Shown in pieces: positions 25,477 through 39,000 of a stretch of 64,000 nt of DNA (position 1 is its first letter; every line of letters starts with the position of its first letter). The stretch is from Rebecca billardiae RCC1528 (Eukaryota; Protista; Haptophyta). Below the pieces are notes generated by a model, which made no database searches, was not told the origin of the DNA, and worked only from the letters and a program-made list of their open reading frames with translations. Made by a program: the position numbers and the translations under genes. Location: contig OZ251230.1 in assembly GCA_965240325.2 (NCBI GenBank), positions 434,001-498,000 on the forward strand, given 5' to 3'.

Positions 25477-27585
25477 TCAGTCGAGATCGCTCAGCCACAG
25501 CGGCACGTACCCGTTGAGCTTCCCGACGAGGTACTCGCGCTCCGCGCCGTCCGAGCGCAGCTGGCCCCACTCGTAGTACGGGACGGTGATCACGCGCCAG
25601 CCCTCGAGGCGCAGCAGGCGCAGCTTGAGCTCGGTGCCGCCGGCCAGCTCCGTCCCCGCCATCGCGAAGTGCGAGGGCCCGAGCACCTCGACGATCACGC
25701 CCGCCGAGCCGTCGCCCACGAGGATGTCGACCGAGCACTGCAGCGCGCCGATCACCGCCTCGTTGGCGTGCGGCACGCCGAGCGAGCGGAGGCACGCGGA
25801 GACGCGGCGGTGCAGCAGGGAGGAGGCGCGCGCGGCAGGCACGCGCGTGCGCGCGCCCCAGCTCCAGTGAGCATCCGCCTCGGCATCCTCGGCCTCGGCG
25901 CCGCGCGCGCGCGCCGACCGCAGCGCGCGCGCGCGCAGCCGCGGCGCCGGCCGGAAGTGCCACGGCCCCTCGAGGGCGAGGCAGGCGGCGCAGTTGTGCA
26001 GCTGGCTGAGGTGCGAGGCCTTCAGCCCGCGCGCGGGCGCATCTCGCTCGTCCGCGTTGAGCGCGTCCACCAGCGCCGTCGTCAGCTCGCGCGGGAGGTA
26101 CCCCTTGCAGCACAGCGCCCAGAGCAGCGTCACCTGCTGCCGCGGCCGCAGCTCGCGCACGCGCTGCGGCATGTGGCCGCCGATGGCCTGGAGCAGAGCG
26201 GGGGCGGGCACGCCGTTCGACGCCGCCGCCCAGGCGGTGGCCGCGAGCCTCGCGGGCGGGAGGGCGTGCACGCTCGACGCGAGCTGCTCGTGCAGGAACT
26301 CCACCAGCTCGCGGCAGGTCACCGCCGCGTCCGCCGCCGCCGCCGCGACGTGCGCCTCGTCGTCGTCGTCGTCGTCGTCCGCGACCAGAGCGCGGGCCGG
26401 CGCGGGCGTGGCGGCGGCGGCGGCGGTGGCAGCGGCGACGGCGCGGCTGGGGGCCGCTCGGACGGTCTGCTCGAGCGTTGGCGCGTCGGGCGGGCCGCAC
26501 AGCTGCGCGGGCACCGCGACGCGTGTGAACGCCCAGAGCAGCCGGCTCTGCTGCATCGGCGTGAAGCGCACGCGCCGCCGCGGGTGCCGCCCCTTGAGGG
26601 GAGGCAGCGCCGCGCCACCGCCCGGCGGCTCAGAGCGCGCGGCGGGCGCGGCCGCCGCCTGGGCGCGCGCGGCGGGCGGGGGCACGGGCTCGTCCGCCCA
26701 CTTGGTGCGCTCGAGCACAGACGCGGCGAGCACACCCGCCAGCGCAGTCCTGTCCTCCCGGACGACCCCGGCACTGGTCGCCGCGCGCGTGAAGAAGTCG
26801 CCCATCTCAGTCAGCTCGGCCGGTGAGAGCGAGCGGAGGAGGTCGCGGCCCGCGCGCTCGCGGCCGGCGAGCAGGCGGGTGAGCGCGGCGTAGAGCATGC
26901 GGCTGCTCTTTCGCGTGACGACGCGCGAGCTCGGGCGGAGTGCGAACGAGTACGCCTTCACCACGCTGTTGAGCTCCGCGCCGCGCAGCCGGCGCAGCCA
27001 GTCCGTCTGCGTCGCCAGCAGCGCCGCCTGCGCAAAGAGCTGCTGCAGCAGCGCGCGCTCGGAGCTCTCGCTCGGGCTGCCCGGTGCGGCGGACGGCGGG
27101 TGCAGCTCGGTGACCTGCGGGGGCGTTAGCCCGTCCTCCTCCTCGTCCTCCAACATCTCGGCGCCGGCCGAGCCGAGCTGCGCCGGCGGCAACCAACGCG
27201 AGGCGGCGCTGAGCACATCCGCCACGCTGCCGGGCTGGAGATCGCGCAGCCGGTCGAGCGCGGCCGCGGCGAGCGCCGCGCTTGAGAGCGCAGCGCGGGA
27301 GCGCACTTCGGCGTCTCTATCGTAGTCCCAGACGTCACGAGCGAGCTCCGCGGCCGTGCTCTCGATCTCTGCGACAGGCGTCAACGGTCCGAGGGCGGCT
27401 GGCGGCGCGACAGGCTTCCGAGGCGGCGCGCGCGCTGACCGGGCGCGCTGCTTGGCCGGCGTGCCCGCACGCTCAGCGCGGCACGCGGCGCTCGTGCAAA
27501 GCGCGCGGCGCACGAGTGCGCCGGCCAGCACGCCCGCGCCAAGCCGGGCCGGTAAGAGCGGGAACGCGCTCCTTATCGCCGCCAT
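25477..27585 (-). CDS. RAP-domain (FASTK/OPR-like) organellar RNA-binding protein
   Basis: C-terminal SVDIL..VIVEVLGPSHF...ELKLRLLRLEGWRVITVPYYEW; helical repeats (LLWAF, TAWAAA, LLWAL); mitochondrial-like presequence from ATG 27585. Confidence 0.87.
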   Translation of the reverse strand: MAAIRSAFPLLPARLGAGVLAGALVRRALCTSAACRAERAGTPAKQRARSARAPPRKPVAPPAALGPLTPVAEIESTAAELARDVWDYDRDAEVRSRAALSSAALAAAALDRLRDLQPGSVADVLSAASRWLPPAQLGSAGAEMLEDEEEDGLTPPQVTELHPPSAAPGSPSESSERALLQQLFAQAALLATQTDWLRRLRGAELNSVVKAYSFALRPSSRVVTRKSSRMLYAALTRLLAGRERAGRDLLRSLSPAELTEMGDFFTRAATSAGVVREDRTALAGVLAASVLERTKWADEPVPPPAARAQAAAAPAARSEPPGGGAALPPLKGRHPRRRVRFTPMQQSRLLWAFTRVAVPAQLCGPPDAPTLEQTVRAAPSRAVAAATAAAAATPAPARALVADDDDDDDEAHVAAAAADAAVTCRELVEFLHEQLASSVHALPPARLAATAWAAASNGVPAPALLQAIGGHMPQRVRELRPRQQVTLLWALCCKGYLPRELTTALVDALNADERDAPARGLKASHLSQLHNCAACLALEGPWHFRPAPRLRARALRSARARGAEAEDAEADAHWSWGARTRVPAARASSLLHRRVSACLRSLGVPHANEAVIGALQCSVDILVGDGSAGVIVEVLGPSHFAMAGTELAGGTELKLRLLRLEGWRVITVPYYEWGQLRSDGAEREYLVGKLNGYVPLWLSDLD

Positions 27586-27885
27586 CCTCCCGATGCATGA
27601 CCCAGCCGTCGTCCTGCATAGCACAAGTCCGGATCTTCCGAGCGGAAGACAGTCAGTCCTTTGTTCATCAGTGGCAGTCAGGCTTTCAGCTTCCTGAAGA
27701 CTCATCAATGACAAAAGACGCATGACTGCGTCCCCAGTGAAGGCGATTACCCCCATATCGCTCAACTGCCCACCTGCCAAATCTTCAGCCGCCGCTGCGG
27801 CCTCGCGTGCGCATCGCACCTGGCACTCAGGCGCGACTCGGTGGGGAGAGCTCTCCTCTCGGGGTCCTCGGGCGGCTGCGGCGCG

Positions 27886-29048
27886 ATGAGCAAGCTCAAG
27901 GTGGACCCGTCGCCAGACATCTCGTTCGATGTGATCGGTGGCAAGCCGAGCTCATGCCCGCTGCGCCTCTTCAACAGCGGGACCGACCACATGGCCTTTA
28001 AGGTGAAGACGACGGCGCCGAAGAAATACTGCGTGCGGCCCAACGCGGGCGTGATCCCGCCAGGCAAGCACGTGGAGGTGCACGTGATCCCGCAGGTGGG
28101 GAGGGGGGGCGAGGGGATCCTCGCATCCGACCTTCAGGGCAAGTGCAAGGACAAATTCATGATCCAGTCCACGACTGTGCCAGTCGACGAGCCGCTCACG
28201 CCCGAGCTGTGGGGGCAGGTGCCGCCCGCTGAGCTAGGGCAGACGCTGCTCCGATGCAAGTACAAGGTGCGCGCGCGCGCCGCGCGCGCGGCGGGCTGCG
28301 CGCGCGGCGGCTCGCGCGTCGCGCCGCGTGGCCGGCGCGCCGGGCCCGCTCCTCGCGCTGAGCACGCACGCTTTGGCTGCTTCCCGACGGGCGCGCGCCC
28401 TCGGTGTGTGCTGCTTGCGTCGCGCGCGTGCGCCGCACAGCTTGCATCGACGGCGGGAGGCGAGAGCGGCTCGATCCCAGAGGGCGAGACGACGCTGACT
28501 GGCGTGCCCACCGTCAGCACCATCGACGTGAACGCGATGGACTTCTCCAACGCCGACGCGGTGCGTGACGCGTGCACGCGCGGGGCCCACCCACTGCCCA
28601 TCGCCTCGGCCCAGCGCCCGGCCCCCGCCGCTCCGCTCGGCGCCGCCCAGCACCCGCCGCGCGGCGAGGCGGCCGGCCCCACCCAGCCCCCGCGGCGAGC
28701 TCTGACGACCCGCTGCGCCCTCGCGGCCGCGCGCTCGCCTCCTCGCCTCCGCCCCGCGCACGCCCGCTCGCGCCCCGCGCGGCTGTGCGCCAGGTGAAGG
28801 CGAAGATCGTCGAGATGAACAAGGCGGTCGAGACGCAGGCGCTGGCCGCGGCGCGCAAGGTGCGCGAGCTGCAGGAGGAGAATGCGAAGCTCTCGGCGCG
28901 CCCGAGCGGCGGCGAGGTGGCGCGGCGCACGTTCGACGCGAAGGCGGCGCCCGCGGCCGAGGGCTTCACCCCGCTCTTCATCGTCATCGTCTCGCTGTGC
29001 ACGTACCTGCTCGGCATGACGACGTCGCTAGTGTCGCTGCCCAAGTGA
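27886..29048 (+). CDS. VAP: VAMP-associated protein (MSP domain, coiled coil, C-terminal TM anchor); exons 27886-28266, 28441-28560, 28794-29048
   Basis: AFKVKTTAPKKYCVRPNAGVI signature, KDKFMIQS; two GT-AG introns. Confidence 0.95.
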
Positions 29049-31072: not shown

Positions 31073-31662
31073 CCGCAAGGTGGATGGTCTCAGAGACAAG
31101 CCACTGGCATGCCGAGCACGCGCTGCGGCCCGTTGCATCCGAGCTCGCGGTGACTCGGTGAGTCCGCACCGGGTACTCTTGCGGCAGTAGCTTGCGGATC
31201 ACAGCGTCATAGATGCGTCAGTGATGCGCACCACCGTGGCACTGATGTCCAAAAACATGCCGCTGCGGCTTTGAACATGGGCGGTGACAGCTGGCGTCAA
31301 TATCGCCTGAGCTGCCTGTGCGTAGCAGCCTGACTTATTCTTATTATACACCGTAGCTGACGAGTGACCGTGGGCCGCGCTGAATCGCGCTGAACTCCAG
31401 CGACGAATTCGAGCTCGCCAACGGGTGGTGAGCGGACTAGCGCGCGCGCGGCACCGGGCGGCCGCGCTTTGAAAGTCGAGCTTCGGCCCGAGTCCGGAGC
31501 GCCACGGATTCCGTCCTTGGCGCGCGGGGAAGCGGAGCCAGCCGGCTGGCGAGCGGCGCACAAGTTCGCTGGGCGAGTGGGCGCGAAGAATCATCAAGGT
31601 CGGTCGGGCATCCTGCCGTCGTCGTCGCGTGGCTCTCGCGAGTAGCCTCACCCGCGCGCGCC

Positions 31663-34600
31663 ATGTTCGGCCTGTTCCGGCGCAAGGCGGAGGCGCCGCC
31701 GCCGCCGCTCGCCGAGCTGTTCGAGCTCGACCGCCTCAAGTTCTACGCTGCGTGCCTCGTGCTGCTGCTCCTCTTCAAGCTCGTCTCGCGCGCCTTCCGC
31801 CGCTCGTACGCGTCGGCAGTCGCGCGCAAGGGCGCGACTGCGCCGTTCAAGCCGCTGCTGTGCAAGGACGCGGCCGCGCCGGCTGGCTCGAAGGGCAAGG
31901 TGGTCGTCATTGGCGGTGGCGGTGCGCGCCTGCCTCCACCGCGCGCCCGCGCGAGCCGCCTCGCGCGCGAGGCGCGCGCGCGCGCGCGCACGCGGCGGTG
32001 CCGCCGGCGTGCCGTCACTGCGACGCTGAGCGCGCGCACGGCTGCGCCGCCACCGTCCCCGACGCCGCTGCCGCCGCGCAGGCTTCCTGGGGCGGCACGT
32101 GGTTGACCAGCTCATCCACAAGGGCTTCTCCGTCCACGTCTTCGACATGCCCGGCGGCTGCCTGCACCCGCGCTCGGACGCGGTGTACAAGCAGGGCGAC
32201 ATCACGTCTGTCGACCAGCTGCGCGCGGCGCTCGGCGGCGCGGTGGCGGTGGTGCACGCGGCGGTGGCGCCCGCGTCGTGCGCGGACGCGCGCAAGATCG
32301 AGGCGATCAACGTCGGCGGCACGCGCGCCGTCCTCGAGGCCGCCCGCGCCGCCGGCGTGCGCGCGCTCGTGTACACGTCGTCCGCGTCCGTCGTGTTTGA
32401 GGGCGACAGCCTCACCGACGTCGACGAGCTGCAGCCGTACGCTGACGGCTCGCGCGCGGACGCGGCGACGAGCGCGCGCGCGCGGGCGGAGGCGCTGGTG
32501 CTCGCCGCGTCGGAGGGCTCGTTCGCCACGTGCGCCATCCGCCCCGGCGTGCTCTACGGCCAGCTCGACCCCGTGTTCGTGCCGGGGCTCGCCGCGGCCG
32601 CGTACACGGGCGGTTCGGCGGTCGTGCTCGGCGGCGGCAAGAACTTCGCCGACTTCACGTACGCGGAGAACGCGGCGCACGCGCACGTGCTCGCGGTGGA
32701 GGCGCTGCTCTCGGCGGAGCGCAAGGCCGGCGTCACCGGCCGCGCCTTCTTCGTCACCGACGGCGAGCCCACCCCCTTCTGGGGCTTCTGCGGCTGCGTG
32801 CTGTACGGGCTGGGGTACGCGGCGCCGTGGCTCAAGCTGCCGCCAGCACTCGGCGCGCTGCTGCTCGGCGGCCTCTCGCGCCAGGCGGTGGCGTTCGCGA
32901 CGACGCACCACTACTTCTCGATCGCGGCGGCGCGCTCCGCGCTGGGGTACACGCCGCTCGTCTCGCAGGCCGACGCGCTCGACGCCACCGTCAAGCACTT
33001 CGCCCACCTGCGCGCGGGCGTGCACGGGCCCGCGCCGCTCTGCTCGCTGCTCGAGCTCGCGAGCGCGACGACGCTCTGCGCGGCGCTCGCGCACGCGGCG
33101 CTGACGGCGCCGTTCGAGCAGCTCGAGGTGGCGCGCGCCGCGGTGTTCGAGGCGCTCGCGCCCGCCGTCGCGCCGCTCGTCGACGCCGGCGTCCCCTTCG
33201 CCTCGCAGCAGCCGCACCTCACCCTGCTCGCGCTCGGCGGCGCGCTCGGCGGCGCTCTGCTGGCGGCCGTGTGCCCGCGCGCGCGGCCGCTCAAGCAGCC
33301 GCGCGTCTTCCCGCCGACGATCCCGGGCATGCCGCTCGTGGGCAACCTGGTGGACTTCCTCAAGGGCCCGCTCGACCTGATCGCCGTCGCGCGCAAGCAC
33401 CACCGCAACATCTTCACGCTGCGCATCGGCCCGCAGCCCATCACCTTCTGCTGCCACCCCGACGGGTACGAGACGTTTGCGCGCGGCAAGGACGACGTGC
33501 TCGACCAGGCGGCCGTGTACGGCTTCACCGTGCCCGCGTTTGGCAAGAACGTCGTGTACGACGCGCCGCTGGACAAGCGGCTGCAGCAGATCAACTTCGT
33601 CGCGGCGATCATGAACACCTCGACCATGCGCTCGTACGTGCCCAAGATCATCAAGGAGGCCGAGGACTTCTTCGACCAGTGGGGCGAGGAGGGGCAGGTT
33701 GAGCTGCACAAGGAGATCGCGCAGCTCACGACGCTCACCGCCTCGCGCTGCCTGCACGGCCACGAGGTGCGCGAGACGCTGTGCAAGGAGGTGGCGGACC
33801 TGTACCACGACATCGACGGCGGGATGCAGCCCATCTCCACCATCATGCCGCGCCTGCCCATCGAGCCGCACCGCAGGCGCGACGCGGCGCGCAAGGAGCT
33901 CGCCAAGCTGTTCGGTGCGCGCAGCGCGCCCGGCGCGCCCGCCCCCGCCCGCGCCGCCGCGCCGCCGGGCGGAGCGCGCGCGCGCGCGCGCCGCAGCGCG
34001 GCGCCGGGCGAGCGACGCGGGGGCGGGCGCGCGGCGCGATGCGCGAGGGGGTGAAGAGAGACTAGTTGCCGCCCCAGGCCGAGTCATAACGGTGACGATC
34101 GCAACTTGCACGTCAGTCAGACCCTCGCGGGCGCGCGCGCGCAATGGGCGTGCGCGCCGCCCCCCTCTCTCCCTCCGGCGCGCGGCGCGGCGCCCTCGCG
34201 CGCTCACGCGCCCGCGCGCGCCGCGCACCGCGCACGCGCCGCGCGCGGCACGGCGGCGCAGGCAGCGTGATCGACAAGCGCAAGGCGTCGGGCGAGAAGG
34301 GCGACGACATCCTGCAGGTCTTCATCGACGCGCGGTACAAGGACGGCACCGCGCTGACCAACGACGAGATCACGGGCCTGCTGATCACGCTGCTCTTTGC
34401 GGGGCAGCACACCTCCTCCATCACCGGCACGTGGCTCGGCATGAACATCGTGGGCTACGGCTACCTCGACGCGGTGTACCAGGAGCAGAAGGCGGCGCGC
34501 GCGGCGAACAACGGCGAGCTCAACTACGACGCACTGATGAGCATGTCGCTCATGCGCAACTGCATCTCCGAGACGCTGCGGTGCGCGCGCGCGACCGCGC

Positions 34601-35138
34601 GCGCCGAGGCGCGCGCGCCGTCGCCCGCGCGCGCTCGCGGTGTGGATGTGCTCACACGCGCTCGCGCGCGCGCGCTCGCTCTGGCCCGGCCCGCGCGCGC
34701 AGGCTGTACCCGCCACTCATCTTCCTGATGCGCAAGGTGGTGGTCGACCGCACGTGCAAGCACTGGACCGTGCCCCGCGGGCACATCCTCGCCATCTCGC
34801 CGCGCGAGGCGGGCCGTGACGAGCGCATCTTCCCGGAGGCGGAGGCCTTCAAGCCGGAGCGCTTTGCGGAGGGCGGCGCGTCCGAGACGCTCTGGTCCTC
34901 GTCGAAGCTCTCGGACGACAAGAAGAAGTTCTCGTACATGGCGTTCGGCACGGGGCCGCACATGTGCCTCGGCCGGCGCTTCGCCTTCCTCCAGCTCTCC
35001 ATCATCTGGGCGGTGCTCTCGAGCAAGTATGAGATGGAGGTGGTCGGCACCATCCCGCCGCCCGACTACGACGCGATGGTGGTCGGCCCCAAGGGCGAGT
35101 GCCACATCAAGTACAAGAAGCGCGCCACCGCGAAGTGA
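31663..35138 (+). CDS. CYP51: Fusion protein: 3-beta-hydroxysteroid dehydrogenase/C4-decarboxylase-like (NSDHL/ERG26) domain plus sterol 14-alpha-demethylase CYP51; exons 31663-31921, 32082-33914, 34262-34580, 34703-35138
   Basis: VVIGGG|GFLG, INVGGT, YTSSASVV, IRPGVLYG, DFTYAENAAHAH (extended SDR); then VYGFTVPAFGKNVVYD, LFAGQHTSS, ETLR|LYPP, FKPERF, FGTGPHMCLG (CYP51). The junction lies inside one uninterrupted exon. Confidence 0.93.
34042..34129 (+). ncRNA. Intronic box C/D snoRNA, snR67/SNORD31-like guide for LSU rRNA P-loop Gm, with a second guide
   Basis: 8 bp terminal stem (cgcgaggg 34042-34049 / ccctcgcg 34122-34129), C GTGAAGA 34051-34057, D' CCGA 34079-34082, C' GTGACGA 34092-34098, D CAGA 34118-34121; two 11 nt antisense elements to conserved LSU motifs. 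Confidence 0.85.
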
Positions 35139-35684
35139 GCGGCGGCCGCGCGGGCAGCAGCTCGAGGACACGCTTGAACACGCACACTCACGCATGCCGC
35201 ATGCCACCGAGTCCAGCCCGGCCCGCCGCCGACCGGATCGGCGTCCGGCGTGACAATAATACACGCGCGTGATGAATGATCCGGCATGGTCATGGACCAT
35301 GTCCATGGTCCAGCGTCGATTCATCAGCGGATTCAGTCGTCCGGCGCGTCGTCACGGCCGGTCAGGCGGTCACCCACGTCGTGTCTGGCAAGCAATCGAC
35401 TGCAGTATCAATGGTACGGTGGCAGTGCAGACAGTGGCGCCACCGTTGGCAGGGCCGCGGCGGTCCGGCCGAGCAAGCTCTTCTGACACTGCTCTCCAGA
35501 ACCAGATGATCAGTCAGGTGCTAGGAGAGAGGCTGCTGCGCCGCAGCCGGAATGTCCGGTGCGCTTATTTTGCCTGGTCACAGGATCTTCAGATCTTGAC
35601 TGATAATAAAGGAAAGCTAAACCCAGGTCCACATGTAAACGTTGTGTACTTATACCCTCTGGCGGCGTGCCATCCGATGCTAAC

Positions 35685-36289: not shown

Positions 36290-38398
36290 TCAGGCAAGCG
36301 CTGCCGAGGCTGCCTCGGCAGCGGCGCTCCAGACGCGTGCAGGGCGTGCGACGAAGAGCGGGAACTCGCCGATCGGCGTCTCGAGCAGCACGCGGCGGCC
36401 GCCGCGCCCAAAGTCGTGCCCGGAGAACCAGTAGATCCACGTGCGCGCCTCGCCGCCAGCCGCCTCGTGCCCGTCGAGGCGGGGCAGGTACACGGCGCGC
36501 ACCTGCGCGCCTGGCTCCGTCACGGGCGCAACGAGCCAGTCCGGGCCGAGGAGGAACTGCCCACCCGCCACCTCCTCGCGCGCGCACTCCGCGTCGTCCG
36601 GGAACTGGAGGAAGAGCGGCCGTAGCAGCGGCAGGCCGCTCGCGGCGTGCTCCTCGCTCAGCGCGCGCACGTACCCGCGCAGGCGCTCGCGCAGCAGCAT
36701 CACCGCCTGGACGGCGGCGTACTCGGCGCCGCCCTCATCGAGCAGCGTCCACAGCTCGTTCGGCCCGTGCGGGTTGCCGCACTCGTCCGCCGGCGCGTGC
36801 TTGCCCACGCGCCAGCCGTGCAGCCGGAAGAGCGGGCAGAACGCGCCAAACTGGAACCAGCGCACGAGCAGCTCGGAAAAGCCGGCCGTGCCGACGCGGC
36901 CGTGCCAGTAGCCGCCGATGTCGGAGGTCCAGAGCGGCACGCCCGAGAGCGCGACGCCCTGCGCGACGCGCACCTGCAGCCGCAGCTCGGCCCACGTCGA
37001 CGCGATGTCGCCGCTCCACAGCGCCGCGCCGTGCGCCCACGTGCCCGGCCACGCTGAGCGCGCGAGCACAAAGTGGTCGCGCACGCCGCGCGCGGCAAAG
37101 CCCTCGGCGATGCCGAGCACGTGCTGGCGCACGAAGCCCTCGCCCACCTCGCCGTCGGCGCCCAGGGCGTACCGCCACGTGCCCACGCGCGCGTCGCCCC
37201 CGAAGCGCTCGGGCTCGCACGCGTCGAGCCAGAGCGCGCGCACGCCGTGCCGGCCGTACCCCGCCCAGACGGCGTCGAAGAAGGCCGCGCGCGCGCGCGC
37301 GTCGAACATGTCGACGAGGTACTGGCCGCCGTTGTCGTACGGCTCGGGCGCGGCGGCGCCGAGCCGGCGCACGAGGCAGCAGCCAGCCGCGGCGAAGCGC
37401 GCGTGCAGCGTCGAGTTGCGCACGGCGAAGGGCCACACCGACACCATCAGCTCGACGCCCAGCTCGCGCAGCTCGCCGACCATCGCCGCCGGGTCCGGCC
37501 AGCACGCGGGGTCGAAGGCGAGGTCGCCCTCGCGCACCCAGTGCTTGTAGTCGACGACGATGATTGCGAGCGGCAGCCCGCGCCGCGCGTGCCCGCGCGC
37601 CACCGCGAGCACCTCCGCCTGCGAGCGGTACCTGTTCTTCGACTGGATGAAGCCGGTCGCGTACTCTGGCATCGGCGGCGCGCCGAGCGCACCCACGGCG
37701 GCGGCGTACCGCCGCAGCACGGCGGCGGCGGGGTTGGACGCGCCCGGGGGCGCGGTGCACACCCACAAGTCGACTGTGCGCGTCGCCGCCGCGTGCCACA
37801 CCACGCCGCCCGCGTCGGAGATGGACACGTTGCCGTACGCCGGCGAGTTCCACACAAAGCCGTACGCCGCGCCCTCGCGCGCGCGCTCGGCCGCGGCCTG
37901 CGCGCCGCCGTCGACGGACATGTAGAACGGGACGAAGACGTCGGCCCCGTGCGACTTGTCGTAGGACTGCGAGTCCGCGAACGCGTGCGCGAACGAGGGA
38001 CGCAGCCCCACGCGCCCGAGCCGGTGCTCGCCCAGCCCGTACAGCCGCTCGGTCGGTCGCGGCGGCGCAAACGCCAGCGTGGCCGAAGCAGTGTCGGCGG
38101 CGCGCGTGCTCGGCGTGCTCGGCGGGCCCCAAACGAGTGGCGCGGTCTGGCGCAGGAGCTCACGCCCGTCGGACACGCGCGAGACGCGCAGCAGCCCGTG
38201 CGCTCCCTCGAGCGACACGCGCAGGTTGCCGTGCACGAGGTCGGCGGAGGCGCCCGCCCCGCTACCCGTGGCGAGCAGCGCCGGGACGAGGGGCTCGACG
38301 ATGGGCGCGCCGGGCGGCGAGATGCGCACGCGAATCCCGTCGTCGCCCAGCGGCTCGAGCCGCGTCGCGCCGAGCCACGCGAGCGCGAGCGTCAACAT
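36290..38398 (-). CDS. Glycoside hydrolase family 31 (alpha-xylosidase-like), intronless, probable signal peptide
   Basis: YGLGEH, IIVVDY, nucleophile WLDACEPE, acid/base WSGD, WTSDIGG, RWFQFGAFCPLFRLHG, QFLLGPDWLVAPV. Confidence 0.94.
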   Translation of the reverse strand: MLTLALAWLGATRLEPLGDDGIRVRISPPGAPIVEPLVPALLATGSGAGASADLVHGNLRVSLEGAHGLLRVSRVSDGRELLRQTAPLVWGPPSTPSTRAADTASATLAFAPPRPTERLYGLGEHRLGRVGLRPSFAHAFADSQSYDKSHGADVFVPFYMSVDGGAQAAAERAREGAAYGFVWNSPAYGNVSISDAGGVVWHAAATRTVDLWVCTAPPGASNPAAAVLRRYAAAVGALGAPPMPEYATGFIQSKNRYRSQAEVLAVARGHARRGLPLAIIVVDYKHWVREGDLAFDPACWPDPAAMVGELRELGVELMVSVWPFAVRNSTLHARFAAAGCCLVRRLGAAAPEPYDNGGQYLVDMFDARARAAFFDAVWAGYGRHGVRALWLDACEPERFGGDARVGTWRYALGADGEVGEGFVRQHVLGIAEGFAARGVRDHFVLARSAWPGTWAHGAALWSGDIASTWAELRLQVRVAQGVALSGVPLWTSDIGGYWHGRVGTAGFSELLVRWFQFGAFCPLFRLHGWRVGKHAPADECGNPHGPNELWTLLDEGGAEYAAVQAVMLLRERLRGYVRALSEEHAASGLPLLRPLFLQFPDDAECAREEVAGGQFLLGPDWLVAPVTEPGAQVRAVYLPRLDGHEAAGGEARTWIYWFSGHDFGRGGRRVLLETPIGEFPLFVARPARVWSAAAEAASAALA

Positions 38399-39000
38399 GA
38401 TGGCCGTTCGCACCAGTATTCAGATATTCGTCATCGATCATAAGCGGCTTTATCATATGCGCGCTTTCGAAAATAAAATCCCCATGGCAACCATCGGATC
38501 GGCATCAAGTTTGGTTCTGCTTCGCTTGCTTCTCGAGTTCTCGCCGTCTCGTCAACGATTGCAAGTACCAACTTGTTTACGGTTGCGCTTCGCTTCTGCA
38601 AGTTTCGCTGAATCGGTAGGGGGTTCTCAATGACACCTGCATGAGTCTCGTTCATTCATGAACTGAACGAGACTCGGTTCCGACTTGAATATGTACTCGT
38701 ACCGGCACGACATATTTCAAAAATTGTGGGGTTTCCTACGATTCGGCTGTCGTTACTAGTCGGCATTTGAGAACCGGTATTTTGGTTCATCCAAACTTGC
38801 GCAGGGGTCGTAAAGAAGCATCTGCAATGGGTACTTTTGTCTCCACTATGACTACGTCTGGAGCTTCGCGACGTCGCGAAGCTTGTCGAGACCAAGTCTC
38901 GAATTGTTCGCTCGCCGTAGCGCGTTCATGATTAGTTCGCCGACGAGCTCGCCGCAGTGCTCCGCTTTGACGCGTCGTCGCTCATTCCGCCCAGCCTGGG

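Follow-up and report, generated by a model that had tools for sequence, protein, structure and literature searches.

Sterol 14-alpha-demethylase (CYP51) is the most conserved cytochrome P450 and a major drug and fungicide target, and yeast interaction data are still the main basis for inferring how it is organised with the C4-demethylation enzymes on the endoplasmic reticulum (ER). In yeast, the ERG28-scaffolded C4-demethylation complex (the 'ergosome') embodies the idea that Erg11/CYP51 and the C4-demethylation enzymes are brought together on the ER through protein contacts that are not themselves catalytic. The C4-decarboxylase (NSDHL, ERG26 or 3-beta-HSD/D) is an extended short-chain dehydrogenase/reductase (SDR) that stands alone and carries a Tyr-x3-Lys catalytic dyad. 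CYP51 also occurs as a natural single-polypeptide fusion with ferredoxin, CYP51fx, which is found in Methylococcus capsulatus and more than 50 bacteria (PMC7947880). Here, a different fusion is described from a 64,000-nucleotide stretch of the haptophyte Rebecca billardiae RCC1528 (contig OZ251230.1, positions 434,001 to 498,000; hereafter the window), in which one gene encodes an NSDHL/ERG26-type domain joined to a complete CYP51. The product is probably an active plant-type CYP51 that carries, within one ER-type membrane protein, a pseudo-NSDHL domain that would tether the enzyme or bind a ligand. Because CYP51 and a domain of NSDHL descent are naturally fused here, the protein offers a direct handle on how sterol demethylation is organised on the ER.

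Frame assembly over the interval that was read (31400-35400) places the fusion gene at window positions 31663-35138 of the forward strand, in four exons with a coding sequence of 2847 nt and a product of 948 aa. From the N-terminus, the protein consists of a membrane helix, the NSDHL/ERG26-type extended-SDR domain, a hydrophobic linker and the complete CYP51. The junction between the domains (residues 399-492, nt 33017-33298) lies within exon 2 and is free of stop codons, and no Met lies between residues 109 and 503. Exon 2 alone matches Pfam 3Beta_HSD (3.9e-50) and the start of p450, the remainder of which is found in exons 3 and 4. All three introns have the extended donor GTGCGCGC and the acceptor CGCAG. 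GC content at third codon positions is 97.6% over the coding sequence, with the SDR, linker and P450 segments all at 97-99%; in the introns, GC is about 82-89% at all three positions and shows no periodicity. The introns consist mostly of GCGC-rich low-complexity sequence with 84-86% GC. Long open reading frames in the other frames and on the minus strand of the locus matched no Pfam family, as expected for GC-rich shadow frames, and alternative coding there was dropped from consideration.

Comparison with relatives supports the same gene model. A homology search with exon 2 returned a 949-aa protein (P0002), 70% identical to the query, with which the window model is collinear end to end and free of indels at the splice junctions. 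Its source, the 3137-nt contig L001, has short flanks and no introns (the site of intron 1 is uninterrupted) and is thus very probably a transcript. A second protein, P0003, is encoded on a 13.9-kb genomic contig of a metagenomic relative (L010), where one long open frame spans the SDR-P450 junction and is followed by p450-bearing frames. Additionally, the cluster of P0004 contains a 948-aa protein of Diacronema lutheri with the same architecture (KAG8460702.1 / A0A8J6C3F1; P0203), which is 73% identical over exon 2 and aligns with the window by tblastn in four collinear blocks that correspond to the four exons. The GC content of the D. lutheri genome is 73% (PMC8379373), and the 70% of the window is compatible with it. 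The host is thus identified as a pavlovophyte akin to D. lutheri but separate from it. A sequence-only reading of this locus had taken it for one spliced frame rather than two merged genes, and had guessed at a pavlovophyte host; the stop-free junction within exon 2, the Met-free linker and the collinear orthologues bear out the former, and the latter fits the D. lutheri orthologue with its shared upstream neighbour.

Transcript evidence comes from a close relative, whose contigs in run X2 (marked 'RNA?') were placed with a threshold of 85%. These cover 32732-32957, 33208-33516, 33494-34529 and 34712-35136, and they remove intron 2, with position 33915 joined to 34267 and four substituted letters. 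One of them (33208-33516) spans from the last linker helix into the P450. The interval 32957-33208 is bare; as it is the least conserved part of the gene, the gap is not evidence of a break, and the missing contig is probably explained by a divergent linker that falls below the placement threshold. Separately, a 202-nt contig in a 2024 run (X1, library type unknown) is identical to window positions 32406-32607, so that the sample may contain this organism or strain. The single gene codes for one polypeptide.

The N-terminal half is of the C4-decarboxylase type. The best solved match to the SDR domain, by far, is human NSDHL (6jkg, 4.3e-39), and an AlphaFold (AF2) model of the window domain is confident (predicted local distance difference test score, pLDDT, 88.9; predicted template modelling score 0.87). 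In a structural comparison with Swiss-Prot, ranks 1-10 are all sterol-4-alpha-carboxylate 3-dehydrogenases with 31-38% identity, comprising plant (Arabidopsis) 3-beta-HSD/D1-3, mammalian NSDHL (37-38%) and fungal ERG26, and SDR42E1 (27-28%) and HSD3B (23-24%) rank below them. SDR42E1 had come first in the Atlas feature search, a language-model lead; this identity was overruled by the ranking of Swiss-Prot structures and identities. With the C4-decarboxylases the domain shares the extended-SDR fold and the Rossmann hallmarks, namely GGGGFLG (GGxGFLG in the family; GxxGxxG), the NAD-binding Asp in VFD, and the catalytic Ser. Thus, the earlier identification of an NSDHL/ERG26-type domain followed by a true CYP51 is upheld by Pfam (3Beta_HSD and p450) and by the solved structures matched by each half.

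In contrast to stand-alone NSDHL, ERG26 and 3-beta-HSD/D, however, the CYP51-fused domain has no Tyr-x-x-x-Lys, for which Ala-x3-Arg is substituted (A215 and R219). The dyad was compared in an alignment of five pavlovophyte-type rows and 40 others, with the D. lutheri and Chromera proteins read separately. A/G-x3-R was found in all six pavlovophyte-type sequences (the window, P0002, P0003, P0004, P0005 and D. lutheri P0203), whereas Y-x3-K was found in 40/40 of the other rows, including five fusions from alveolates, and in Chromera too. The change is specific. When conservation of at least 85% across 41 other sequences is required, 43 columns qualify; of these, 33 are retained throughout the pavlovophyte clade and eight in the majority of its members. 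Only the catalytic Tyr and Lys differ in every sequence of the clade. Approximately 20 residues are also missing in this clade after the LP motif, corresponding to the hydrophobic lid or membrane-association region of NSDHL, and the middle Gly of GxxGxxG is altered in P0002 (GGGAFLG) and D. lutheri (GGGSFMG).

Selection on the domain has nonetheless persisted. Between the window and P0002, identity is 69% in the SDR domain, 43% in the linker and 87% in CYP51, and Nei-Gojobori omega is about 0.42 for the SDR domain, 0.28 for CYP51, 0.79 for the linker and 0.76 for the N-terminus, values that are rough in absolute terms given the extreme third-position GC but informative in their ranking. With the fold and most conserved positions retained, the dyad lost and purifying selection acting, the SDR half is most likely a pseudo-dehydrogenase that is kept for a non-catalytic role, and with A215 and R219 in place of Tyr and Lys throughout the pavlovophyte-type sequences, C4-decarboxylase activity is unlikely. 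That the dyad is missing, as alignment with canonical homologues shows, had been overlooked in the sequence-only reading, where a covalent two-enzyme demethylation metabolon was proposed. Such a metabolon is unlikely in this genome, for which 'CYP51 with a pseudo-NSDHL domain' is the better label; two joined enzymes may yet be the right description of the alveolate orthologues, where YxxxK is intact.

The C-terminal half has the signatures of CYP51. The B'-helix/B'C-loop signature Y-x-x-[FLI]-x-x-P-x-F-G-x-x-V-x-Y-D is present as YGFTVPAFGKNVVYD (residues 566-580) and matches 6q2c column for column. The helix I signature AGQHTS is present in exon 3 (LLFAGQHTSS) and is invariant in 8/8 full-length fusions, and the heme-thiolate motif FxxGxxxCxG is present in exon 4 as FGTGPHMCLG (FGTGPHMCLGRRFA; Cys892 at 34965-34967). 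The best solved match of the CYP51 N-terminal half of the window is the obtusifoliol 14-alpha-demethylase of Acanthamoeba (6q2c, 3.9e-52); nearly all of the 56 PDB matches to this half are named CYP51 or sterol 14-demethylase, the last being an unnamed P450. The CYP51 domain of P0002, 87% identical to that of the window, matches 6q2c at 4e-118. The C-terminal half is a complete CYP51, presumably the one that serves the alga as its working sterol 14-alpha-demethylase.

The likely substrate preference can be read from the B' helix, in which a single position sets the preference for C4-monomethyl or C4-dimethyl sterols, the Phe of Trypanosoma brucei favouring the monomethyl form (PMC2850312). As had been noticed from the letters alone, the window reads VYGF here (residues 565-568). 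F568 (33524-33526) is equivalent to F105 of T. brucei and lines up with Phe in 6q2c and with Leu in human CYP51. With Phe at this position, as in plants, Acanthamoeba and T. brucei, the enzyme is predicted to prefer 4-alpha-monomethyl substrates such as obtusifoliol. It resembles the CYP51 of those organisms in its B'-helix, helix I and heme-Cys signatures, but they have a short N-terminal anchor where the fusion has approximately 490 residues before the Pro-rich hinge. The heme motif also differs, reading CxGRRF in the fusion, whereas in most other CYP51s of the set Glu follows the Gly (CxGE).

Membrane insertion is predicted at both ends of the SDR domain. The N-terminal hydrophobic helix that had been proposed earlier was confirmed at residues 27-45, and the linker contains two or three predicted helices. 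In the AF2 model of D. lutheri the linker helices fall at 410-430, 437-459 and 464-483 with low confidence; the full-length model has a pLDDT of 64.9 overall and below 50 in the linker, which is too uncertain for topology or domain contacts. The charge distribution, the hydropathy and these low-confidence helices would fit a topology with a lumenal N-terminus, a first transmembrane (TM) helix, a cytosolic SDR domain, a helical hairpin and a cytosolic CYP51.

To survey the distribution of the architecture, P0002 was searched exhaustively with HMMER against 1.84 billion representatives, and the matches were examined by Pfam scan, alignment and cluster membership. In addition to D. lutheri, 3Beta_HSD-linker-CYP51 proteins were found in Vitrella brassicaformis (CEL98090.1 / A0A0G4EM83, and a 921-aa MMETSP transcript), Chromera velia (Cvel_1108 / A0A0G4HJT9, 998 aa), Cardiosporidium cionae (KAF8820568.1, 985 aa), and, in transcriptome shotgun assemblies (TSA), Rhytidocystis pertsovi (1024 aa) and Digyalum oweni (833 aa); a further one lies on a Logan contig (P0050). 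The architecture thus extends beyond pavlovophytes. The alveolate fusions have the same domain order, the hydrophobic linker and the CxGRRF heme motif, and their CYP51 belongs to the same clade. Together with P0050, they differ from the pavlovophyte fusion in lacking the extra N-terminal TM helix, in having Leu or Ile rather than Phe at the B'-helix specificity position where the motif was read, and in keeping YxxxK; overall identity of the alveolate fusions is 30-37%. Given the intact dyad, the alveolate fusions may be truly bifunctional, and the intact dyad in chromerids and early apicomplexans against the dead one in pavlovophytes makes a ready enzyme-versus-scaffold comparison of one domain. 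The presence of the fusion also means that some early apicomplexans, or organisms sequenced alongside them, carry CYP51.

In a CYP51 tree of 85 sequences, all fusions fall in one clade (Shimodaira-Hasegawa-like approximate likelihood ratio test, SH-aLRT, 98), together with P0034, P0035 and a few fragments. Similarly, CxGRRF occurs in 20/114 CYP51 sequences, 19 of which are in the fusion clade. In the SDR tree, the sister group of the pavlovophyte fusion domains (support 100) consists of NSDHL-cytochrome b5 proteins, P0014 and P0193 (SH-aLRT 95), and monophyly of all fusion SDR domains is not rejected (approximately unbiased test, p = 0.125). With one CYP51 clade and fusion SDR monophyly not rejected, the trees are most simply read as a single old origin of the fusion, after which the haptophyte branch lost catalysis; alternatively, the fusion may have formed more than once or been passed between lineages. 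The fusion may serve as a rare genomic marker for a relationship, or for gene transfer, between haptophytes and myzozoans.

Two JGI transcript-type CYP51s, P0034 (892 aa; L009, 63% GC) and P0035 (816 aa), are sister to the pavlovophyte fusions. Each has an N-terminal region of approximately 350 aa without a Pfam SDR match, GxxGxxG or YxxxK; BLASTP gave an E-value of 0.001 for P0035 and was not significant for P0034. A search with this region returned only the query, and the Atlas gave weak epimerase-like leads. Tentatively, the region is taken for an SDR remnant, the same fusion having decayed further in a different and perhaps prymnesiophyte lineage.

How a dead dehydrogenase domain might act in front of CYP51 can be outlined as follows. 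The SDR domain would neither oxidise nor decarboxylate, and would instead act as a docking or ligand-binding module, most likely by docking CYP51 to the C4-demethylation enzymes or by holding a sterol or NAD(H). The most economical mechanism would be pairing with an active NSDHL paralogue through the usual SDR dimer interface, such that CYP51 is held beside the C4-demethylation enzymes. The tether of the yeast ergosome is a separate small membrane protein, whereas in the present proposal the tether would be part of the CYP51 polypeptide, an enzyme domain that has lost its activity. The ancestral fusion would have had an active SDR domain, as chromerids and early apicomplexans would still have, and catalysis would have been lost on the haptophyte side. 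A candidate for the pairing partner is the NSDHL-b5 type. This group (P0014, P0193 and P0206-P0209; 472-634 aa; L008, 79% GC) combines an N-terminal TM helix with an NSDHL-type domain, in which YAASK is intact, and a cytochrome b5 domain at the C-terminus. Members of the group are candidates for the lineage's active C4-decarboxylase.

Several observations weigh against a pseudo-NSDHL tether. The tethering role itself is pure inference. Some atypical SDRs function without the canonical Tyr (biliverdin-IX-beta reductase and PCBER-type reductases), and with the nucleotide motif well kept and omega well under 1, altered or residual chemistry is possible. Pavlovophytes make 4-desmethyl sterols, and some enzyme must therefore perform the C4-decarboxylase step; a separate YxxxK NSDHL was not demonstrated for this genome or for D. 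lutheri, the search having yielded the NSDHL-cytochrome b5 family. In the maximum-likelihood SDR tree, the alveolate fusion domains are placed apart from the pavlovophyte ones. An extra internal transcription start may exist in the interval that the relative's contigs leave bare, and the absolute omega values, as stated, are rough.

Some of these points would favour an active bifunctional enzyme, in which the SDR half performs NAD+-dependent 3-beta-oxidation and C4-decarboxylation through another base and passes 4-monomethyl sterols towards CYP51. The retained fold, GGGGFLG, NAD-binding Asp and catalytic Ser are in its favour, as are the constraint on the domain, the lack of a demonstrated separate active NSDHL in this lineage, and the YxxxK of the alveolate orthologues, from which the fusion was probably once bifunctional. 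The B'-helix Phe, moreover, suits the substrate formed after the first C4 demethylation (PMC2850312). However, the Tyr and Lys are the sole universal positions changed in every member, which looks like targeted catalytic loss, and the dyad helix shows no new Tyr or His, the lid is shortened and GxxGxxG is weakened in two members. In the plant-type pathway, a cyclopropyl isomerase works between the first C4 demethylation and CYP51, so that direct channelling is not obvious. Bifunctionality is therefore considered unlikely here, and residual or altered catalysis would become likely if the genome has no other YxxxK NSDHL. Ranked behind it, and improbable in turn, is a regulatory sensor, in which NAD(P)(H) or a sterol intermediate would bind to the dead domain and thereby adjust the activity or stability of CYP51. 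It would act in the manner of NmrA and HSCARG, atypical SDRs that are sensors of redox state. Nucleotide-binding motifs are kept here without the dyad in a confidently predicted Rossmann fold under purifying selection; the altered middle Gly of P0002 and D. lutheri, however, speaks against strict conservation of dinucleotide binding.

A functionless SDR half, surviving as an N-terminal anchor and spacer for CYP51, would agree with the higher omega of the SDR domain relative to CYP51, and with the sister sequences P0034 and P0035, whose N-terminal region is no longer recognised by Pfam as an SDR. Yet all or most members retain 41/43 of the conserved NSDHL positions, which neutral decay would not have spared, the SDR domain is far better conserved than the linker (69% versus 43%) and its fold is confidently predicted; a decaying relic is accordingly very improbable. 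Least credible, and already contradicted, is a misreading of two adjacent genes as one, or an assembly artefact. The transcripts do come from relatives rather than from this exact organism, but the junction lies in one stop-free exon with no Met between residues 109 and 503, the same architecture is found in D. lutheri, L010 and L001, and it recurs in Vitrella, Rhytidocystis and Digyalum (MMETSP/TSA transcripts) and in Chromera and Cardiosporidium (gene or protein models). The preferred interpretation is consequently still a working CYP51 with a pseudo-NSDHL domain. A wider proposal can be built on it: that the fusion arose once, as a shared derived character of haptophytes and myzozoans (chromerids and apicomplexans) or by transfer between them; that the alveolate form is a two-enzyme machine; and that in haptophytes the decarboxylase half turned into a pseudoenzyme through which CYP51 is physically coupled to the C4-demethylation complex, a rewiring that would contribute to the unusual 4-alpha-methyl sterols and pavlovols of pavlovophytes. 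Taken as a whole, this is speculative and would more readily fail than hold.

Compared with CYP51fx, the window protein is likewise a natural single-polypeptide CYP51 fusion. The partner in CYP51fx, however, is a C-terminal electron carrier that feeds the heme, whereas the partner here sits at the N-terminus and originates from a second enzyme of the sterol pathway; an SDR partner cannot supply single electrons to a P450, and the fusion is thus unlike CYP51fx. Self-sufficient P450 fusions (CYP51fx and the P450 BM3 type) are recognised by their redox partner, and the window fusion is not of this kind; a Pfam scan of it found no ferredoxin, flavodoxin or reductase domain. No description of an NSDHL-CYP51 fusion was found in the literature searched, outside which most subscription journals lie, and CYP51-ferredoxin was the sole natural CYP51 fusion encountered there. 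The D. lutheri genome paper is silent on P450s and on the fusion gene (PMC8379373). Public databases hold the fusions (A0A8J6C3F1, A0A0G4EM83, A0A0G4HJT9 and KAF8820568.1) under generic automatic names only: '3-beta hydroxysteroid dehydrogenase/isomerase domain-containing protein', 'putative lanosterol 14-alpha demethylase' and 'hypothetical protein'. The fusion is therefore provisionally regarded as undescribed. Of the earlier suggestion of novelty, the lack of a literature description stands, but the architecture is not unique to one lineage and is already deposited under those names.

The coordinates of the gene, its domains and its neighbours are given in Table 1. The MSP-domain gene is directly upstream of the fusion gene and in the same orientation in 3/3 pavlovophyte-type genomes (the window, D. 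lutheri and L010), a conserved micro-synteny. VAPs are ER contact-site tethers, and co-regulation of this VAP-like gene with the fusion gene is conceivable.

Table 1. Features of the NSDHL-CYP51 fusion gene and adjacent genes (window coordinates unless a contig is named).
Feature	Position	Strand	Remarks
RAP-domain protein gene	25477-27819	-	Upstream neighbour, not sterol-related
MSP (VAP-like) domain gene	27841-28797	+	Upstream neighbour, not part of the fusion gene
Exon 1	31663-31921	+	Start codon, TM helix, spacer and first Rossmann strand; encodes GGGG of GGGGFLG, last codon split by intron 1; N-terminus MFG.F kept in P0002 and P0203; tblastn block 1-89
N-terminal TM helix	31741-31797	+	Residues ~27-45; signal-anchor-like, predicted from hydropathy
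NSDHL/ERG26-type extended-SDR domain	31888-33016	+	Residues 76-398, split by intron 1
Intron 1	31922-32081	+	160 nt, GTGCGCGC...CGCAG, phase 1, GC 86%, without codon periodicity
Exon 2	32082-33914	+	1833 nt, 610 aa; most of the SDR domain, the entire linker and the N-terminal half of CYP51
SDR catalytic dyad site	32465-32479	+	A215-T-S-A-R219 in place of Tyr-x3-Lys
Ala-rich hydrophobic linker	33017-33298	+	Residues 399-492, two or three predicted helices
Last linker helix	33212-33280	+	Residues ~464-486; where the usual CYP51 membrane anchor would sit, just before the Pro-rich hinge
CYP51 N-terminal half	33299-33914	+	Pro-rich hinge PPTIPG; B' helix VYGFTVPAFGKNVVYD
Intron 2	33915-34261	+	347 nt, phase 1
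Exon 3	34262-34580	+	Middle of CYP51 with the helix I signature LLFAGQHTSS; Pfam p450 6e-12
Intron 3	34581-34702	+	122 nt, phase 2
Exon 4	34703-35138	+	C-terminal part of CYP51; stop codon 35136-35138; Pfam p450 2.5e-22
GH31 glycosidase gene	36290-38413	-	Downstream neighbour, not sterol-related
MSP gene in relative, L010	5525-6169		
MSP gene in relative, L011	3422-5425		

Other unusual domain combinations were seen among the sequences. Two metagenomic proteins, P0128 and P0191 (676 and 691 aa; ENA contig of 11.6 kb), have an EBP/EXPERA domain, of the sterol delta8-delta7 isomerase family, N-terminal to CYP51. This is a different sterol-pathway fusion, and the two proteins fall in a separate part of the CYP51 tree. 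Five proteins of 726-751 aa (P0008, P0017, P0157, P0163 and P0181) contain a 3Beta_HSD (NSDHL-like) domain, to which an adh_short/KR domain is added in P0008 (by hmmscan) and P0017 (by precomputed Pfam); these may be fusions of C4-decarboxylase and 3-ketoreductase. Finally, P0178 (1356 aa) contains three P450 stretches (Pfam p450, 2.3e-193), and looks like either a tandem multi-P450 polypeptide or a merged gene model.

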